Assembly (NCBI RefSeq): GCF_964204645.1
Contig: NC_134035.1
Coordinates: forward strand, 12,308,451-12,372,450
DNA length: 64,000 nt
Direction of reading: 5' to 3'
Origin: Tubulanus polymorphus
Taxonomy: Eukaryota; Animalia; Nemertea
Part shown: positions 35,104-60,479 of the stretch, in pieces
How positions within the stretch are numbered: the stretch's first letter is position 1
How the letters are laid out: each line of letters opens with the position of its first letter
Translations under genes and position numbers: made by a program
Notes under the pieces: generated by a model
What the model saw: only the letters and a program-made list of their open reading frames with translations
Databases searched by the model: none
Told to the model about the DNA's origin: nothing

Positions 35104-38100
35104 CACAGAACCAACATCCAAACTCCACAGATGAATTACCACAGAACCACCATCAAACTACCACACCAGACTCCAAGGTATTTATGATCTAGGTGATGCA
35201 GCTTCCAGACTTAAAGAATCAAGACCACAGAACCACCATCCAGACATCGCAGATGAATTACCATAGAACCAGCATTCAGATTCAACAGATGAATAACCAC
35301 AGAACCAACATCAAACTCTACCACACCAGCAGAATCCAAGGTACTTATCATGTTTTAGGTGATGCAGCTTCAAGACCTGACAGATGAATTACCACAGGAC
35401 CAACATCAACCTCTACCACAGAACCAACATCCAGACTCCACAGATGAATTACCACAGAACCAACATCAAACTCTATCACACCAGCAGAATCCAAGGTATT
35501 TATCATGTTTTAGGTGATGCAGCTTCAAGACCTGACAGATGAATTACCACGGGACCAACATCAACCTCTCCCACAGAACCATCATCCAGACTCCACAGAT
35601 GAATTACCACAGAACCAACATCAAACTACCACACCAGACTCCAAGGTATTTATGATTTAGGTGATGCAGCTTCCAGACTTAAAGAATCAAGACCATAGAA
35701 CCACCATCCAGACTTCGCAGATGAATTACCATAGAACCAGCATTCAGACTTCCCAGATGAATAACCACAGAACCAACATCCAGACCCCACAGATGAATTA
35801 CCACAGAACCAACATCAAACTCTATTACAGAACCAATGTCCAGACTCCACAGATGAATTACCACAGAACCAACATCAAACTCTATCACAGAACCAACATC
35901 CAAACTCCACAGATGAATTACCACAGAACCAACATCAAACTACCATACCAGACTCCAAGGTACTTATGATCTAGGTGATGCAGCTTCCAGACTTAAAGAA
36001 TCAAGACCACAGAACCACCATCCAGACTTCGCAGATGAATTACCACAGAACCAACATTCAGATTCAACAGATGAATAACCACAGAACCAACATCAAACTC
36101 TACCACACCAGCAGAATCCAAGGTATTTATCATGTTTTAGGTGATGCAGCTTCAAGACCTGACAGATGAATTACCACAGAACCACCATCCAGACTCCACA
36201 GACGAATTACCACAAAACCAACATTAAACTATCACAGAACCAACATCCAAACTCCACAGATGAATTACCACAGAACCAACATCAAACTACCACACCAGAC
36301 TCCAAGGTATTTATGATCTAGGTGATGCAGCCTCCAAACTTAAAGAATCAAGACCACAGAACCACCATCCAGACTTCGCAGATGAATTACCACGGAACCA
36401 ACATTCAGATTCAAAAGATGAATTACCACAGAACCAACATCAACCTCTACCACACCAGCAGAATCCAAGGTATTTATCATGTTTTAGGTGATGCAGCTTC
36501 AAGACCTGACAGATGAATTACCACAGGACCAACATCAACCTCTACCACAGAACCAACATCCAGACTTCACAGATGAATTACCACAGAACCAACATCAAAC
36601 TCTATCACAGAACCAACATCCAAACTCCACAGATGAATTACCACAGAACCAACATCAAACTACCACACCAGACTCCAAGGTATTTATGATCTAGGTGATG
36701 CAGCTTCCAGACTTAAAGAATCAAGACCACAGAACCACCATCCAGACTTCGCAGATGAATTACCACAGAACCAACATTCAGATTCAACAGATGAATAACC
36801 ACAGAACCAACATCAAACTCTACCACACCAGCAGAATCCAAGGTATTTATCATGTTTTAGGTGATGCAGCTTCAAGACCTGACAGATGAATTACCACAGG
36901 ACCAACATCAACCTCTACCACAGAACCAACATCCAGATTTCACAGAGGAATTACCACAGAACCAACATCAAACTCTATCACAGAACCAACATCCAAACTC
37001 CAAAGATGAATTACCACAGAACCAACATCAAACTACCACACCAGACTCCAAGGTATTTATGATCTAGGTGATGCAGCTTCCAGACTTAAAGAATCAAGAC
37101 CACAGAACCACTATCCAGACTTCGCAGATGAATTACCACAGAACCAACATTCAGATTCAACAGATGAATAACCACAGAACCAACATCCAAACTCCACAGA
37201 TGAATTACCACAGAACCACCATCAAACTACCACACCAGACTCCAAGGTATTTATGATCTAGGTGATGCAGCTTCCAGACTTAAAGAATCAAGACCATAGA
37301 ACCACCATCCAGACTTCGCAGATGAATTGCCATAGAACCAGCATTCAGACTTCCCAGATGAATAACCACAGAACCAACATCAAACTCTACCACACCAGCA
37401 GAATCCAAGGTACTTATCATGTTTTAGGTGATGCAGCTTCAAGACCTGACAGATGAATTACCACAGGACCAACATCAACCTCTACCACAGAACCAACATC
37501 CAGACTCCACAGATGAATTACCACAGAACCAACATCAAACTCTATCACAGAACCAATGTCCAGACTCCACAGATGAATTACCACAGAACCAACATCAAAC
37601 TCTATCACAGAACCAACATCCAAACTCCAAAGATGAATTACCACAGAACCAACATCAAACTACCACACCAGACTCCAAGGTATTTATGATCTAGGTGATG
37701 CAGCTTCCAGACTTAAAGAATCAAGACCACAGAACCACTATCCAGACTTCGCAGATGAATTACCACAGAACCAACATTCAGATTCAACAGATGAATAACC
37801 ACAGAACCAACATCCAAACTCCACAGATGAATTACCACAGAACCACCATCAAACTACCACACCAGACTCCAAGGTATTTATGATCTAGGTGATGCAGCTT
37901 CCAGACTTAAAGAATCAAGACCATAGAACCACCATCCAGACTTCGCAGATGAATTGCCATAGAACCAGCATTCAGACTTCCCAGATGAATAACCACAGAA
38001 CCAACATCAAACTCTACCACACCAGCAGAATCCAAGGTACTTATCATGTTTTAGGTGATGCAGCTTCAAGACCTGACAGATGAATTACCACAGGACCAAC

Positions 38101-44100: not shown

Positions 44101-47100
44101 ATTACCACAGGACCAACATCAACCTCTACCACAGAACCAACATCCAGACTCCACAGATGAATTACCACAGAACCAACATCAAACTCTATCACACCAGCAG
44201 AATCCAAGGTATTTATCATGTTTTAGGTGATGCAGCTTCAAGACCTGACAGATGAATTACCACGGGACCAACATCAACCTCTCCCACAGAACCATCATCC
44301 AGACTCCACAGATGAATTACCACAGAACCAACATCAAACTACCACACCAGACTCCAAGGTATTTATGATTTAGGTGATGCAGCTTCCAGACTTAAAGAAT
44401 CAAGACCATAGAACCACCATCCAGACTTCGCAGATGAATTACCATAGAACCAGCATTCAGACTTCCCAGATGAATAACCACAGAACCAACATCCAGACCC
44501 CACAGATGAATTACCACAGAACCAACATCAAACTCTATTACAGAACCAATGTCCAGACTCCACAGATGAATTACCACAGAACCAACATCAAACTCTATCA
44601 CAGAACCAACATCCAAACTCCACAGATGAATTACCACAGAACCAACATCAAACTACCATACCAGACTCCAAGGTACTTATGATCTAGGTGATGCAGCTTC
44701 CAGACTTAAAGAATCAAGACCACAGAACCACCATCCAGACTTCGCAGATGAATTACCACAGAACCAACATTCAGATTCAACAGATGAATAACCACAGAAC
44801 CAACATCAAACTCTACCACACCAGCAGAATCCAAGGTATTTATCATGTTTTAGGTGATGCAGCTTCAAGACCTGACAGATGAATTACCACAGAACCACCA
44901 TCCAGACTCCACAGACGAATTACCACAAAACCAACATTAAACTATCACAGAACCAACATCCAAACTCCACAGATGAATTACCACAGAACCAACATCAAAC
45001 TACCACACCAGACTCCAAGGTATTTATGATCTAGGTGATGCAGCCTCCAAACTTAAAGAATCAAGACCACAGAACCACCATCCAGACTTCGCAGATGAAT
45101 TACCACGGAACCAACATTCAGATTCAAAAGATGAATTACCACAGAACCAACATCAACCTCTACCACACCAGCAGAATCCAAGGTATTTATCATGTTTTAG
45201 GTGATGCAGCTTCAAGACCTGACAGATGAATTACCACAGGACCAACATCAACCTCTACCACAGAACCAACATCCAGACTTCACAGATGAATTACCACAGA
45301 ACCAACATCAAACTCTATCACAGAACCAACATCCAAACTCCACAGATGAATTACCACAGAACCAACATCAAACTACCACACCAGACTCCAAGGTATTTAT
45401 GATCTAGGTGATGCAGCTTCCAGACTTAAAGAATCAAGACCACAGAACCACCATCCAGACTTCGCAGATGAATTACCACAGAACCAACATTCAGATTCAA
45501 CAGATGAATAACCACAGAACCAACATCAAACTCTACCACACCAGCAGAATCCAAGGTATTTATCATGTTTTAGGTGATGCAGCTTCAAGACCTGACAGAT
45601 GAATTACCACAGGACCAACATCAACCTCTACCACAGAACCAACATCCAGATTTCACAGAGGAATTACCACAGAACCAACATCAAACTCTATCACAGAACC
45701 AACATCCAAACTCCAAAGATGAATTACCACAGAACCAACATCAAACTACCACACCAGACTCCAAGGTATTTATGATCTAGGTGATGCAGCTTCCAGACTT
45801 AAAGAATCAAGACCACAGAACCACTATCCAGACTTCGCAGATGAATTACCACAGAACCAACATTCAGATTCAACAGATGAATAACCACAGAACCAACATC
45901 CAAACTCCACAGATGAATTACCACAGAACCACCATCAAACTACCACACCAGACTCCAAGGTATTTATGATCTAGGTGATGCAGCTTCCAGACTTAAAGAA
46001 TCAAGACCATAGAACCACCATCCAGACTTCGCAGATGAATTGCCATAGAACCAGCATTCAGACTTCCCAGATGAATAACCACAGAACCAACATCAAACTC
46101 TACCACACCAGCAGAATCCAAGGTACTTATCATGTTTTAGGTGATGCAGCTTCAAGACCTGACAGATGAATTACCACAGGACCAACATCAACCTCTACCA
46201 CAGAACCAACATCCAGACTCCACAGATGAATTACCACAGAACCAACATCAAACTCTATCACAGAACCAATGTCCAGACTCCACAGATGAATTACCACAGA
46301 ACCAACATCAAACTCTATCACAGAACCAACATCCAAACTCCAAAGATGAATTACCACAGAACCAACATCAAACTACCACACCAGACTCCAAGGTATTTAT
46401 GATCTAGGTGATGCAGCTTCCAGACTTAAAGAATCAAGACCACAGAACCACTATCCAGACTTCGCAGATGAATTACCACAGAACCAACATTCAGATTCAA
46501 CAGATGAATAACCACAGAACCAACATCCAAACTCCACAGATGAATTACCACAGAACCACCATCAAACTACCACACCAGACTCCAAGGTATTTATGATCTA
46601 GGTGATGCAGCTTCCAGACTTAAAGAATCAAGACCATAGAACCACCATCCAGACTTCGCAGATGAATTGCCATAGAACCAGCATTCAGACTTCCCAGATG
46701 AATAACCACAGAACCAACATCAAACTCTACCACACCAGCAGAATCCAAGGTACTTATCATGTTTTAGGTGATGCAGCTTCAAGACCTGACAGATGAATTA
46801 CCACAGGACCAACATCAACCTCTACCACAGAACCAACATCCAGACTCCACAGATGAATTACCACAGAACCAACATCAAACTCTATCACAGAACCAATGTC
46901 CAGACTCCACAGATGAATTACCACAGAACCAACATCAAACTCTATCACAGAACCAATGTCCAGACTCCACAGACGAATTACCACAGAACCAACATCAAAC
47001 TCTATCACAGAACCAACATCCAAACTCCACAGATGAATTACCACAGAACCAATATCAAACTACCACACCAGACTCCAAGGTATTTATGATCTAGGTGATG

Positions 47101-51775: not shown

Positions 51776-53582
51776 TAGAACCACCATCCAGACTTCGCAG
51801 ATGAATTACCACAGAACCAACATTCAGATTCAACAGATGAATAACCACAGAACCAACATCAAACTCTACCACACCAGCAGAATCCAAGGTATTTATCATG
51901 TTTTAGGTGATGCAGCTTCAAGACCTGACAGATGAATTACCACAGAACCACCATCCAGACTCCACAGACGAATTACCACAGAACCAACATTAAACTATCA
52001 TAGAACCAACATCCAAACTCCACAGATGAATTACCACAGAACCAACATCAAACTCTACCACAGATCCAACATCCAGACTTCACAGATGAATTACCACAGA
52101 ACCACCATCCAGACTTCACAAATGAATTACCACAGAACCAACATCAAACTCTACCACAGAACCGACATCCAGACTTCACAGATGAATTACCACAGAACCA
52201 ACATTAAACTCTATCACAGAACCAACATCCAAACTCCACAGATGAATTACCACAGAACCACCATCAAACTACCACACCAGACTCCAAGGTATTTATGATC
52301 TAGGTGATGCAGCTTCCAGACTTAAAGAATCAAGACCACAGAACCACCATCCAGACTTCGCAGATGAATTACCACAGAACCAACATTCAGATTCAACAGA
52401 TGAATAACCACAGAACCAACATCAACATCTACCACAGAACCAACATCCAGACTTCACAACTGAATTCCCACAGAACCAACATCAAACTCTACCACAGAAC
52501 CAACATCCAGACTTCACAGATGAATTACCACAGAACCAATATCAAACTCTACCACAGAACCAACATCCAGACTTCACAAATGAATTACCACAGAACCAAC
52601 ATTAAACTCTACCACAGAACCAACATCCAGACTTCACAAATGAATTACCACAGAACCAACATCAAACTCTACCACAGAACCAACATCCAGGCTTCACAAA
52701 TGAATTACCACAGAACCAACATCAAACTCTACCACAGAACCAACATCCAGACTCCACAGATGAATTACCACAGAACCAACATTAAACTCTACCACAGAAC
52801 CAACATCCAGGCTTCACAGATGAATTACCACAGAACCAACATCAAACTCTACCACAGAACCAACATCCAGACTTCACAAATGAATTACCACAGAACCAAC
52901 ATCAAACTCTACCGCAGAACCAACATCCAGACTCCACAGATGAATTACCACAGAACCAACATCAAACTCTACCACAGAACCAACATCCAGGCTTCACAGA
53001 TGAATTACCACAGAACCAACATTAAACTCTACTACAGAACCAACATCCAGGCTTCACAGATGAATTACCAAAGAACCAACATTAAACTCTACTACAGAAC
53101 CAACATCCAGACTTCACAAATGAATAACCACAGAACCAACATCCAGACTTCACAGATGAATCACCACAGAACCAACTTCCGGGCTACAGTTCCAAGGTAT
53201 TTAATAGATTTCAGGTGATGAAGCATCCAGACCTAACAGATGGAAGATCATAGCCCTTACATCAAGACTTCACACTGATGATGCAAACAAAGTACCACAA
53301 TATGGGAAGTCTGATAAGGTAAATTTTACTTTGGCGATGATTAATATCGAACGGATCGTCAAAGTTGTCTAAATTGAATAATCAGGGATTAGGGGCAATT
53401 GTTAGGGGAGAATTAGGGGCCTATATCAAATCAGTGAATATCACTGTGTGAACGAATGTTAGACATATGACAATGATATCCATCTTCAACGACGAAATAA
53501 GACGAAATAAAAAGAAAACGAAGATAATCTGGCTAAGAAAATATTTTTATTGCGCTGTGTGTGCAAATGATATCAATAGTAG

Positions 53583-53617: not shown

Positions 53618-54264
53618 TTAATAAATATAATATTTATTTTACAGTAAACTGTAAAATAAATTTGAAGGTTTTAGACAAATCGTTTTGGCATAAATAATTA
53701 AAATGAATGAGCAAAAAACATTGATACTTGTGTTTTAGAAATCGTATACGCACACAAGTATTTATGTAGCAAGTGTTTGTCTCTCGTATATATATAATAT
53801 ATATATACATATACATATAAATCATCACTATTGTTTTTGTCGATCTGTCGCCTACTGGAGATGAGCGTTTGTCTATCGCGGCGGCGGAGCGCTCTGTTGG
53901 CTTCGATGATCAGTTTCTGCGATGTAAAGATTGATAGTATCGTTGAGTATTCTCTCTATCAGTCTCTCACAACGCGAGTGAGTGAGTGAGTGAATAAATC
54001 CTTGCGTAACCGATAGAAAATTTCAACGCGCGATTAGAATCTACAGATCTCTTATTCTAATTACGAAATTCCTTGCGAGGGAAAATTTCATAGAATTTGA
54101 TCCTGAGTTGGGTAATTCTTGCCAGGATGTTTATCTCTGAAAGTCTTAATTCCTCACATGCCAGTGGGTGTGTTTGTGTATGTGGTGTGCTCGTGTCTGT
54201 ACAAACCATTGCGGTTCGCGGTTGGTTGGCTGGGCCGACGGGAACCTACTGCGGCATGCGAGTA

Positions 54265-54416
54265 TTATTTTCCTCCGCGACACAAGTATTTACCGGCTCC
54301 CGGAGCGTACCAACAGCCGGAGCCAGCTCTTTTCGTCTGAGTTTTGTCGGCACCGGATACGGTTTGTTCCAAGTCGACAGGTTCTGATGACGACGAACTC
54401 AACTGTTTCTCAGCGT
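54265..54416 (-). CDS. Last coding exon of a putative neuropeptide / secreted peptide precursor
   Basis: Minus-strand (CT)n polypyrimidine tract plus atttcatcag| acceptor; translation xAEKQLSSSSSEPVDLEQTVSGADKTQTKR-AGSGCWYAPGAGKYLCRGGK*: acidic/Ser spacer, dibasic KR, two Cys, terminal G-K amidation signal, stop. Confidence 0.72.
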
Positions 54417-55682
54417 CTGATGAAATAGAGAGAGAGAGAGAGAAAATATATTAAAACATACTCAGTATTATTTATTATTGTGAAATATTAAAATCGGAAT
54501 TCAGACTCGGTCAATTTCCACTTCATTCGTATCTTAAACTCAAAATTCAATTTAATTGCGAAAGTTGACAAGTTTTCAATGATAAAATGATAGAAACTGT
54601 TACTGTGATATCTATTTTGAGTAAAACAACCTAGCCTATTAGTACCGATGGTTCCAATTTCACAATCATTAGACATACGATCATACAAATAATCATTCAA
54701 ATAACATATATCATATAAATAATCATCGAAACATTAGACAGGGTATTTTCCTATCGAATAAATGAACTTATGAAAAAAATTATTAATCAAAACCAAAATG
54801 TATAATTTGATATCACAATTTTCACATTATTGGCATTCTAATAGTCAGCACAGAAGAACAGTGATCATATTTGACAGTGATCAATTACAATCATGTATAT
54901 GACATCAGTAATAATGGGTATATCTAGTACATGAAACTAGTACGTCAATGAAAAGATAGATTTTGTGTAGTAGAACACAGGTCGACAGTGAACAGCCTGA
55001 TTGCCGAGTGGCTATAAATGTGTATCGTCTTCACGCGAGTTACAAACATTGAGAAGATTAATCTTGTAGTGAGAAATTGAGTAGATAGGAATCTATGAAT
55101 CTCTATATAACGAGAGAGAAGAAAAAAAAACAATTTCAATTTTGTGCTCGTATCGTATCGCGTATTAGTATGTGTCGATAATAAACACGTGTGTGATTTT
55201 CTGGTGAAAGTAGATTTTTCGGCGGCTCGCGCGGTGCGAGTTATAAGTAATCCCGCGCTGCCACAGCGGCCGCCGCAGGGCCCGTGCGCAGCGGTTAAAG
55301 ACGATTCCGTCAAGATGAACTTGAGAATAAGGTTTTAATGATGACTGCCAGTTGGTGTCTTGTTGGGCACTAACTACTTCACGCCTCGTCTCAAATCGAT
55401 CTATATCGGTAAATAGCTAGTACATGAGAAGAGAAGACACATGTTTTTCACACCGTGGGATTCGCAGCTCTTGAAAGCGTTTCTTTTTCTCGAGATCGAC
55501 GAAATCTCAACAATTTCCAGCCGTTATAAACTGCGGGGCATTGTGCTTATTGTAAAAAACCATCAGTATCTTTCATATCAGATCTGAAAATCATATCTAA
55601 TCTAAAATCAGCGTTAACCATCAGGTAATGATCTACATATATGAAACAGACGAGAAGATACGCAATATCCGTGTAAGATGAT

Positions 55683-56248: not shown

Positions 56249-58019
56249 TATTCGATAAATTTCTCACGTGTGATCGTATTTTTAAGATTGCATATGAATA
56301 TTGGTGAAATTGTTCATAGGACATCGACGCGTATAGTATAGTCTCAGAGCGTATAGAAACTACAAACATTTTTTACGCGTAAAGCTTCATTCGAAATCTT
56401 GAAACGAACGAGATAGATTTGTTGTTTATCAACCATTGATAAAACGCTCGGTACGCGTTGAAAGATAATGAACCATAAAATCCCACATCATCCGAATTCT
56501 TAAAATGAACGAGATTTTTATTTCAACTATCGATAGAAATCTCTCGAGTCCGCGTTGACAAGTAATTATAAACTCCCACACTAAGGACAAAACTAGTCAT
56601 CAGTAATGTTTCCTTGAGCATAAGTTTATTAGCTAATATTCTAATAGCGCCATCTCTAGGAATACTGAGTGTGGAATCTAAGCGTTCGATCTTGTATCGT
56701 TTCTGTTTAGTATTTTATCTTTTTTACAAGTATAGCTCAATATTTTTCTGGATACAATATTTTTGTGGATACAACAGAATGAAATCGAACGAACGACATA
56801 AAACCCACTCAGTTGTAAATGTGATATCTACCTTTAAGTTTCAATAATAATTTCACATCGTTTAGAATCCTTTCCAATTCTGAAATAAAAAAAAAAATAG
56901 CAGAGAGTGAGTGACAGTGACGAGTAATTACACTTCATTCGCAATAAGAAAATTAACACGGCAAATTCGTTTTTATGGATCGGTTTGCGACCAAAAAACC
57001 ATTTCAGCTCCACACATATCTGTTGTATAGTTTTTGAATCGAGAAATGTAAATCTCATCCGATTCACTGTTTTAATTTTAATGCAATCCGATATAAAACA
57101 CGGTATCAGTGTTTTACATAGGACACAGTAACTAAAGGTTCCATGTAACGTGTTGGTTATAGAGGAAATGATGTCATAGCGCATCATTTTGGACGTCGAG
57201 CACAAGGATAGTTAACTGAAGATAAAACGCAAAAGTTCCCAAAACAACCCAGGCCTGTGTAGAGGGGTTTGGGGGTAGCGAATAATTGTGCCCTTCAAAA
57301 AGTCAGTGTGATAGAATTCGAAATTTGGATACCATTTTCATGTTTTGGCAAAAGGTTTAACTGCAAAGGGTCAAAGGGTATTGTGTGATCCAAGCACCCA
57401 GGAATTATTCCGTAAAGTTTTCAATTCGGCGCTGGTCTGTAACTTCACCCTATAATTCATCGAGTTGATTCTACTTACTTATCGTCTGAGATTTATCTGG
57501 TTTATTAAAATCTATGTTTTCTATTGCGATGTCGTTACAGTTGAGTTCATCTTTCAAATAGAGGCACTTGAATCTCTGCAGAATATCTACAATATTAATA
57601 TAGAATAAATATCACTGATTGAAGCGGTGACAATTCGAGATTTTCTATTGTTTCCGCAGTTTTCTCCCCACCGTCACAATATCGAATATTTGAATGCGTT
57701 CATTTTTAAACCGAGGCGTTTTATACCGAATTTGATTCTTAGAAAAAAACATATTTAATATTTTATGATATCATCCGCTTGATCCGTATGAATTTTAATT
57801 GTAATTTGAGCCGATGTCTAAGTTTGATATGTTTGTCATTATACACTGACTGAAACTTGGAAAATACTTTCGCTTAAAAATGGCGACCTTTTTGAACGAA
57901 TTGAAATTTCAAGCAATTGCATTCAATAAAATTCTTAGTAGTAATTTTTGTATCGGAAGATATTTCATTCCGGAATCTGGACCTTAAAGAACGGCAGAAC
58001 AACGCCCTGCTCTAAATTT

Positions 58020-58943: not shown

Positions 58944-60479
58944 AGATGACTGGCTGAGTTTTTGAATGTTTGTCTTGACTGAACCCGTGACCAGTCAGCT
59001 ATGAGTTGACCAATCAGCTAACCGTGTGGCGTGACCGATCGTCAGGCTTAATGACTGAATGTCAAATTATTCTAATGCACTAACAATAAATTGGATTGAA
59101 TTTCTTCATATCTTGAATGACTGATCAAACAGTGAAGCGCGACTGTAAAGATATCGTAAATACGTACCAGGCACTGGACTTTTTAAACTGATTAAATCAC
59201 ACAATAATTCGCCGTTATGAATTCTACATCTGACCCGTTTGACAACTTTCTCTGTAATAGAAATAGATAGATACTTTATAATCAATGGATTATTAGTCTG
59301 AAATTGTGGAGGCGGCAGCTGGTTTAGTTTGACTATGAGCCGCGACAGGGTGAAATTAATTCATTCTCAATAATTCGACTCTCGAAACAGACGCCATCAT
59401 CAACGTCGTTCCTTCCGCCAAACTAATGGACGAAAGTTGTTAAGTTTTTCGCGGTTTCTGTGTATTGAGTTTTGTTATAAGTTACCCGTGACCGTTGAGT
59501 GAGGTTTATTCGACATCAACGTTGTTTTAGCGTCTCGCGTAAATCACTCCAACTCGCCAGAACTAGTTACATTATGATCGTCTAACTATATTGACTCCAC
59601 GTGTTTATTTTCTATATCAGGGTTATTTATATTCACTCGGGCGGGGGCTTTCTCTCTTTGAGAAATGAATATGACGTTTTTCAGCGGACGGATATTCATC
59701 GGGCAACGACGCTCATAAAAACAACTGTAAATAATACAGATAGATCCTATCGACCCCCGTGGGAGACATTTACCTACAAATATCATAAATAACCTAACAC
59801 ATAGGATCTATCACTGCAGATATTCATATTGTTTGACCGCAAGGAGTTGATAAATCATCCCCGTCCCCGTAACCACTCGCTGGTTGCAGTTCAATAATAT
59901 CACTTAAACTATAAAACTGAGAAAATTGAATCTATTTCAAACATTTTTTCCCGTAAGAATGCAGGCCTATCCTTGCAGTAATGGCGGTATTACCCGATAA
60001 AGAGAGTTTCAATTTTGATTTTCCTCGACAGAAATAAACACCTTAGAGACGTTGACAAAAATAGCCAATCAATTAGTAACGCACTTAATAAGCGTAGAGC
60101 TTCGATCAGCAGCGTTCTTCTCTTTCTCTGCTATATTATTTTTTTCGCCTCATATTATTATAACGATGCCTCCTGGCGCCTAAATTCCGTTTCTGTCAGC
60201 GAAATAACACTTTTTTCTGTAAGGCGACAATGTTATAATGTTGCTATCTACGGCTAGATTACGGTCGATAATTAGTTGTTTATCTATTCGAAATTGTGTT
60301 GATTTCATGTTCGATTGATAAGCGCTGCCAACTATACGAAACTTCTAGTAAAATCCATTTGTTCATATCGAAATACCCGCGGGTCTGTATTCGTTTGATA
60401 GTAAGGAACTAATGATTGCGATCTGTTAATGACAAGTTTGCATTTATTTGAAGAGGGTGCGATAGATATAGATATATAA

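Follow-up and report, generated by a model that had tools for sequence, protein, structure and literature searches.

An uncharacterized gene of Tubulanus polymorphus, a ribbon worm, as a candidate precursor of a cyclic, amidated peptide

The window (the whole stretch of 64,000 nucleotides analysed here) carries on its minus strand, at 54265-54416, the genuine last exon of an annotated gene; it is more than a chance open reading frame (ORF). The gene is LOC141913230 of the palaeonemertean ribbon worm Tubulanus polymorphus, and its product in RefSeq is the 162-amino-acid XP_074660803.1, "uncharacterized protein LOC141913230". The gene is thus already annotated, as uncharacterized. Read directly from the sequence, the exon translates as ...SSDAEKQLSSSSSEPVDLEQTVSGADKTQT-KR-AGSGCWYAPGAGKYLCRG-GK-TAA, and its fuller reading after the opening AC is AEKQLSSSSSEPVDLEQTVSGADKTQT-KR-AGSGCWYAPGAGKYLCRG-GK-TAA. 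All 49 residues of the exon are identical to residues 114-162 of XP_074660803.1, which was also the only match to the exon (E = 2.9e-24) in a HMMER search of 1.84 billion representative proteins. An earlier note, made from the letters alone, had described a minus-strand exon with a (CT)n acceptor that reads through a spacer, a KR site, a peptide and a GK-stop; sequence and translation agree with that description, and the exon is identical to the end of the RefSeq protein. The note had also called the exon hidden, which is true of a prokaryote-style ORF list, where it is missing, but not of the RefSeq gene model, which already includes it.

Table 1. Features of LOC141913230 in window coordinates (exon 1 in window-equivalent coordinates)
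Feature	Position	Strand	Remarks
Exon 1	85485-85581 (window-equivalent)	-	97 nt; encodes the ATG and the signal peptide; 21.5 kb beyond the end of the window
Exon 2	59168..59251	-	84 nt, phase 1-1; residues 33-61 part; KR 37-38, Cys41/Cys50
Exon 3	57479..57586	-	108 nt, phase 1-1; residues 61-97 part; Cys68/Cys77
Exon 4	56832..56879	-	48 nt, phase 1-1; residues 97-113 part; spacer, part of predicted helix
Intron 4 3' splice site	54417..54446	-	polypyrimidine tract with (CT)9, acceptor AG at 54418-54417; read from the sequence
Exon 5, last coding exon	54265..54416	-	152 nt; residues 114-162 and TAA at 54265-54267
Lys141-Arg142, predicted prohormone-convertase site	54328..54333	-	one of two dibasic sites
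Predicted mature 18-mer AGSGCWYAPGAGKYLCRG, residues 143-160	54274..54327	-	Cys147, Cys158, 10 residues between
Gly161-Lys162, putative amide donor Gly	54268..54273	-	from the sequence; putative role after the carboxypeptidase E / PAM pathway
Probable 3' UTR	53633..54264	-	to the first AATAAA, 53638-53633; putative UTR end

The acceptor of intron 4 reads ttttctctctctctctctctctatttcatcAG|AC, with a tract that ends in ...tttcatcAG. Upstream of the exon the frame has no ATG and runs into a stop immediately 5' to the polypyrimidine tract, and the exon is therefore coding only if spliced. Since it opens with two bases, AC, which complete the codon G|AC (Asp113), intron 4 is in phase 1; the phase-1 entry at 54416/54417 proposed in the earlier note has the same acceptor and phase as the RefSeq model. 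On the other side of the exon, a hexamer position scan placed the first AATAAA about 630 nt 3' of the stop codon.

Four more exons lie upstream (Table 1). The exons were compared singly with the protein XP_074660803.1, with splice junctions taken from the RefSeq model; all five gave their matching segment of the protein, with the AG/GT flanks present. The four introns are all GT-AG and all in phase 1, and the codons that they divide, G|AG, G|AT, A|AA and G|AC, encode Glu33, Asp61, Lys97 and Asp113, in agreement with the protein. Exon 2 is enclosed by an ORF at 59106-59285, and none of the internal exons 2-4 contains an ATG. Exon 1 is 26 kb upstream of exon 2, past the end of the window, which is where the earlier note had guessed that the signal-peptide exon would lie. 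That note's search of 54.4-64 kb was right in finding no signal-peptide exon there, but overlooked exons 2, 3 and 4, all of which are coding and within the window. Our scan of 54.4-74 kb for an ATG followed by a hydrophobic stretch and a donor also gave no convincing upstream exon. In the NCBI pipeline, a join across a first intron of 26 kb would normally require transcript alignments if the gene lacks homologues. LOC141913230 is single-copy: a six-frame search of the 268-Mb, 77-contig T. polymorphus genome gave no paralogue of any of its exons.

Neither a homologue nor a paralogue of the gene was found, and a 32-kb satellite lies about 1 kb from its end. Both observations would suit an annotation artefact, or a young non-functional ORF that is transcribed but untranslated or without function. 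We regard this as very unlikely. The 162-codon frame stays open over 31 kb through four canonical introns of the same phase, which is hardly to be expected by chance; it starts with a signal peptide and ends with a textbook processing cassette. Furthermore, exon 5 is not significantly similar to the satellite, the best match being 10 nt long (E = 3.5).

The satellite itself is a tandem array of about 32 kb (window 21186-53143) that starts about 1 kb downstream of the LOC141913230 stop and about 0.5 kb beyond the AATAAA at 53638-53633. Its unit of about 60 bp is made of two halves of about 30 bp (ACCACAGAACCAACATC...), and is mixed with variant units of 155-433 bp. Higher-order copies occur at the kb scale: the TRF rows 35839-37194 and 44552-45907 are equal in period, copies, score and consensus, at an offset of 8713 bp. 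The array has a strong strand asymmetry (GC skew about -0.39, AT skew +0.36), and the 304-aa "ORF" on the plus strand at 52304-53218 is the satellite repeat read in frame. We also considered that the 18-mer might have originated from the satellite, one reverse frame of which reads SGCWFCG and so resembles SGCWY, yet we rejected this on the 10-nt best match given above.

The signal peptide that the earlier note expected in the full ORF is present as a signal-peptide-like N-terminus (residues 1 to ~24), with a hydrophobic core at residues 7-17 of mean Kyte-Doolittle hydropathy 3.03 (11-residue window; a heuristic measure). XP_074660803.1 has only two dibasic sites, KR 37-38 and KR 141-142. The segment that follows the signal peptide, SLQNHHRQEKVV-KR, has neither a Gly donor nor RF/RY/RW. 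Between the two KR sites there are about 100 residues, comprising two C-x8-C pairs, a predicted helix and an acidic, Ser-rich spacer; the pairs are C-RIHNGELL-C in exon 2 (Cys41/50) and C-LYLKDELN-C in exon 3 (Cys68/77). The predicted 18-mer behind the second KR site contains the Cys loop C-WYAPGAGKYL-C. It has an unmodified pI of 8.9 and a net charge of about +3, and the calculated monoisotopic mass of AGSGCWYAPGAGKYLCRG-NH2 with the disulfide is 1812.819 Da, which corresponds to [M+2H]2+ at 907.417 and [M+3H]3+ at 605.280.

KR is a prohormone-convertase site, and a C-terminal Gly-Lys is the carboxypeptidase E/PAM amidation signal. Judged from its sequence, the combination of a putative signal peptide, a KR site and a C-terminal Gly-Lys is the standard layout for the release of an amidated peptide. 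In the processing that we propose, the signal peptide would be removed in the ER and the Cys147-Cys158 disulfide would form; a proprotein convertase would cut behind both Lys141-Arg142 and Lys37-Arg38; a carboxypeptidase would take off Lys162; and peptidylglycine alpha-amidating monooxygenase would use Gly161 to amidate Gly160. This would yield the cyclic beta-hairpin 18-mer AGSGCWYAPGAGKYLCRG-NH2, which would act on a GPCR not yet paired with it, and the four-cysteine middle part of about 100 residues would become a spacer or an associated peptide. The T. polymorphus genome contains convertase genes with a P-domain as well as copper type II monooxygenase domains. Among the latter, four tandem pairs of PF01082 (copper type II monooxygenase) matches with a spacing of about 13 kb are found at C3:23388139-23427735, which suggests a local expansion of PHM/DBH-like genes.

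Taken as a whole, we give roughly even chances to LOC141913230 being an orphan prohormone-type precursor, whose last exon would yield a cyclic, amidated signalling peptide of 18 residues. The most likely role of such a peptide would be that of a lineage-restricted neuropeptide or peptide hormone. We hold more tentatively, as a possibility short of even chances, that the 18-mer founds an unrecognised neuropeptide family, either palaeonemertean-specific or too divergent elsewhere, with a GPCR of its own.

The structure predictions are compatible with this layout. In single-sequence AlphaFold2 models the 18-mer forms a two-stranded hairpin, with strands at 147-150 and 155-158 and a P-G-A-G turn, and the hairpin block reaches pLDDT values of 58-70 when the full-length protein is modelled and of 72-80 for residues 125-162 (38 residues) alone. 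The beta-hairpin with an APGAG turn that the earlier note had read from the letters is thus recovered in two model runs, and we place moderate confidence in a beta-hairpin spanning the Cys147-Cys158 loop, as predicted by these single-sequence models. Overall model confidence is low (mean pLDDT 40 for AlphaFold2, 0.52 for the ESM Atlas). Both predictors gave low confidence for residues 25-140 (pLDDT 30-50), a region in which the low-confidence AlphaFold2 model has a helix at residues 92-119. A low-confidence or disordered chain is usual for propeptides.

The middle part of the protein lends itself to a different explanation. In a mutual alignment, exon 2 and exon 3 score above 99.7% of shuffles, and this likeness, together with the uniform 1-1 phases, suggests from the sequence an internal exon duplication. 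With a significant internal repeat in its four-cysteine middle, the protein could work as a folded whole and not as a precursor: it would be a small, uncleaved secreted protein in which KR and GK are incidental and the six non-signal cysteines make three local disulfides. The C-x8-C units would then be a repeated module, and symmetric phase 1-1 exons are the typical signature of exon-shuffled extracellular modules. Nevertheless, we judge this explanation to be unlikely. The pLDDT of 30-50 over residues 25-140 in both predictors speaks against a folded middle part, no domain family was matched, and the order acidic Ser-rich spacer, KR, Cys-loop peptide, G-K-stop makes a very specific prohormone arrangement.

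We searched for relatives of the candidate precursor in several ways. Against 1.84 billion representatives, HMMER gave no match besides XP_074660803.1 itself; few nemertean proteomes are covered by the protein libraries, and with that many sequences E = 0.001 is out of reach for an 18-mer of about 60% identity. Word searches were blank with the exon 5 residues and returned only the protein itself with the whole of XP_074660803.1, the former result being expected because the method weighs only proteins of similar length. Pfam scans of XP_074660803.1 and of its residues 25-112 matched no domain, a PDB sequence search gave no relative of the protein, and the ESM Atlas returned noise only (best feature score 0.80, TM-scores <=0.31). 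The six frames of the T. polymorphus genome gave no match besides LOC141913230 itself. In the literature, fragments of the peptide were not found in PMC or bioRxiv full text, and a search for "CRGamide" gave irrelevant matches only. The precursor is missing from the nemertean proneuropeptide list, which has 64 T. polymorphus entries (PMC8557429 supplements); the curated T. polymorphus set has an anterior-end transcriptome as its source (PMC8557429). The nemertean neuropeptide supplement also has no entry for prohormone-4. The five families of cone-snail DREP (10.1101/2022.08.05.502922) were considered and rejected, since size and cysteine pattern do not match. The earlier note had been unable to place the peptide, and our searches of protein libraries, Pfam, PDB, genome frames and nemertean lists likewise gave no relative.

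In annelid hairpin antimicrobials such as arenicin, a disulfide-closed beta-hairpin lies at the C-terminus of a larger secreted BRICHOS precursor, and the placement of the 18-mer is similar. The same processing could serve a secreted toxin or antimicrobial peptide from epidermal mucus or proboscis glands, acting on other organisms. The predicted disulfide hairpin is mildly cationic (pI 8.9) and no homologue turned up in our searches, and orphan, fast-evolving, lineage-restricted secreted Cys peptides are what venom and defence genes typically encode. Nemertean peptide toxins are secreted in mucus and from the proboscis (PMC6410017). We attach a low probability to such a role. The peptide is absent from the T. 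polymorphus toxin transcripts in a toxin survey of 14 nemertean species (PMC9415933), and the gene is single-copy with no expanded family. Compared with the arenicin type, the LOC141913230 peptide has a far lower charge and a Gly/Ala-rich loop; a charge of about +3 with such a loop is weak for a membrane-active hairpin. Moreover, Pfam found no BRICHOS domain upstream of the hairpin (XP_074660803.1, residues 25-112) and no other toxin domain.

Curated neuropeptidomes exist for few spiralian phyla, nemerteans among them. The nemertean one comprises 72 precursor groups, with 45 types for T. polymorphus (Thiel et al. 2021, PMC8557429). Should the precursor reading be true, the LOC141913230 peptide would add an orphan ligand to the spiralian set, and the gene would provide a test case for the origin of a lineage-restricted neuropeptide, given its symmetric phase-1 exons, the possible exon duplication and an elevenin gene on the same chromosome. 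The predicted mass of 1812.82 Da is a defined target for peptidomics, and the peptide could be used for receptor deorphanisation. A gland-derived peptide would instead represent a new toxin or defence scaffold in nemerteans. In either case the result concerns one uncharacterised gene and introduces no new principle.

Among known systems, luqin has the same cysteine spacing. Luqin/RYamide precursors have a conserved C-terminal C-x10-C (PMC7041311); as in LOC141913230, the cysteines are exactly 10 residues apart and lie in the last exon of the precursor, a likeness insufficient alone for membership. In luqin precursors the defining luqin peptide comes right after the signal peptide, whereas XP_074660803.1 has none, and no amidated peptide is excised from the luqin C-x10-C region, in contrast to the prediction for the 18-mer. 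T. polymorphus has a luqin gene at C6:14209166-14212192 (minus strand), with a signal peptide and QQWRPQGRF-GKR in exon 1, and an ORF about 1.2 kb downstream of that exon carries its C-x10-C, C-VLFYSRIPTS-C. We rejected a luqin identity on these grounds: the genuine luqin gene, on contig C6, has its own C-x10-C exon, and XP_074660803.1 lacks the luqin peptide.

Elevenin (L11) is closer in sequence. In eight nemerteans, including T. polymorphus, it reads C-RKYVFAP[RK]-C-RG-VSA-KR straight after the signal peptide (PMC8557429). Both peptides have 17-19 residues, one disulfide loop, an aromatic-x-Ala-Pro in the loop and Cys-Arg-Gly, and both are flanked by KR. With respect to the elevenin core [YF]-V-[FY]-A-P-x-C-R-G, LOC141913230 shares Y-A-P and C-R-G, and its Pro and Cys are separated by six residues and not by one. 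Elevenin has eight residues between its cysteines versus 10 in the 18-mer, and lies right after the signal peptide, whereas the 18-mer occupies residues 143-160 of 162. At its C-terminus elevenin is non-amidated, with a G-V-S-A-KR tail, in contrast to the GK-stop amidation signal of LOC141913230. We located the canonical T. polymorphus elevenin gene at C11:10584052-10584077 (locus C11:10582552-10585577), on the same contig and strand (minus) as LOC141913230 and 1.78 Mb apart from it. Its mature peptide is split after Cys-Arg by an intron that we read as phase 2; because this intron divides the peptide, two whole-peptide DNA patterns missed the gene and a shorter pattern succeeded. The introns of LOC141913230, in contrast, are phase 1 throughout and leave the peptide uninterrupted. 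The earlier note's view that the peptide is not elevenin is upheld, since loop, position, tail and intron all differ and a canonical elevenin gene exists elsewhere in the genome.

LOC141913230 could instead be a divergent elevenin paralogue, arisen by duplication on the same chromosome, with a loop that grew from eight to 10 residues and a gained amidation site. The aromatic-x-A-P in the loop and the C-R-G are common to it and to nemertean elevenins (C-R-K-Y-V-F-A-P-R-C-R-G), and the shared contig makes up about 5% of the genome. We find this origin quite improbable. The letters in common amount to about five residues in total, and the 10-residue loop, the C-terminal position, the amidation signal in place of GVSA-KR and the phase-1-only introns, as opposed to a phase-2 intron within the peptide, all depart from elevenin; in addition, a genome search with XP_074660803.1 missed the elevenin locus. 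The location on the same chromosome hints only weakly at paralogy.

The last comparison is with the somatostatin/allatostatin-C (ASTC) group, in which a single disulfide-looped peptide is likewise found at the extreme C-terminus behind KR. A loop of 10 residues, as in LOC141913230, is also present in vertebrate somatostatin-14 and echinoderm SS1. However, the six-residue ASTC loop is invariant in protostomes (PMC9048919), with C-LVNLVA-C in nemertean ASTC and C-FFHAVS-C in ASTC-2 (PMC8557429). SSRP requires W-K in the loop (PMC9048919), whereas Trp and Lys in the LOC141913230 loop are six residues apart, with no WK, and SSRP-like genes have been reported absent from nemerteans (PMC9048919). 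All somatostatin/ASTC genes examined have in common a phase-0 intron in the pro-region (PMC9048919), unlike LOC141913230 with its phase-1 introns only. Since LOC141913230 has no WK motif, no six-residue ASTC loop and no phase-0 intron, we rejected membership in the somatostatin, ASTC or SSRP-like families; the earlier note had set allatostatin-C aside, and loop size (10 versus 6), sequence pattern and intron phase concur. The terminal layout is shared nonetheless. Nemertean ASTCs, whose precursors follow the pattern KR-peptide-C..C-Y-GRK-stop, are also amidated via G-(R)K-stop (PMC8557429), like the predicted amidation at the Gly-Lys-stop of LOC141913230, and the allatostatin C2 precursor of Lineus longissimus ends in KR-DYVRDCFFHAVSCY-GRK, the same arrangement; in that species amidated, dibasic-flanked peptides, including allatostatin C2, have been confirmed by MS (Thiel et al. 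2021, PMC8557429). For T. polymorphus, two receptors are labelled as somatostatin/ASTC-type, and one ASTC precursor and no ASTC-2 is given (PMC8557429 supplements), so that one receptor in this group may lack a known ligand. Because there are two receptors but one ASTC precursor, the 18-mer could be the missing second ligand of a somatostatin/ASTC receptor, with a somatostatin-like loop of 10 residues.
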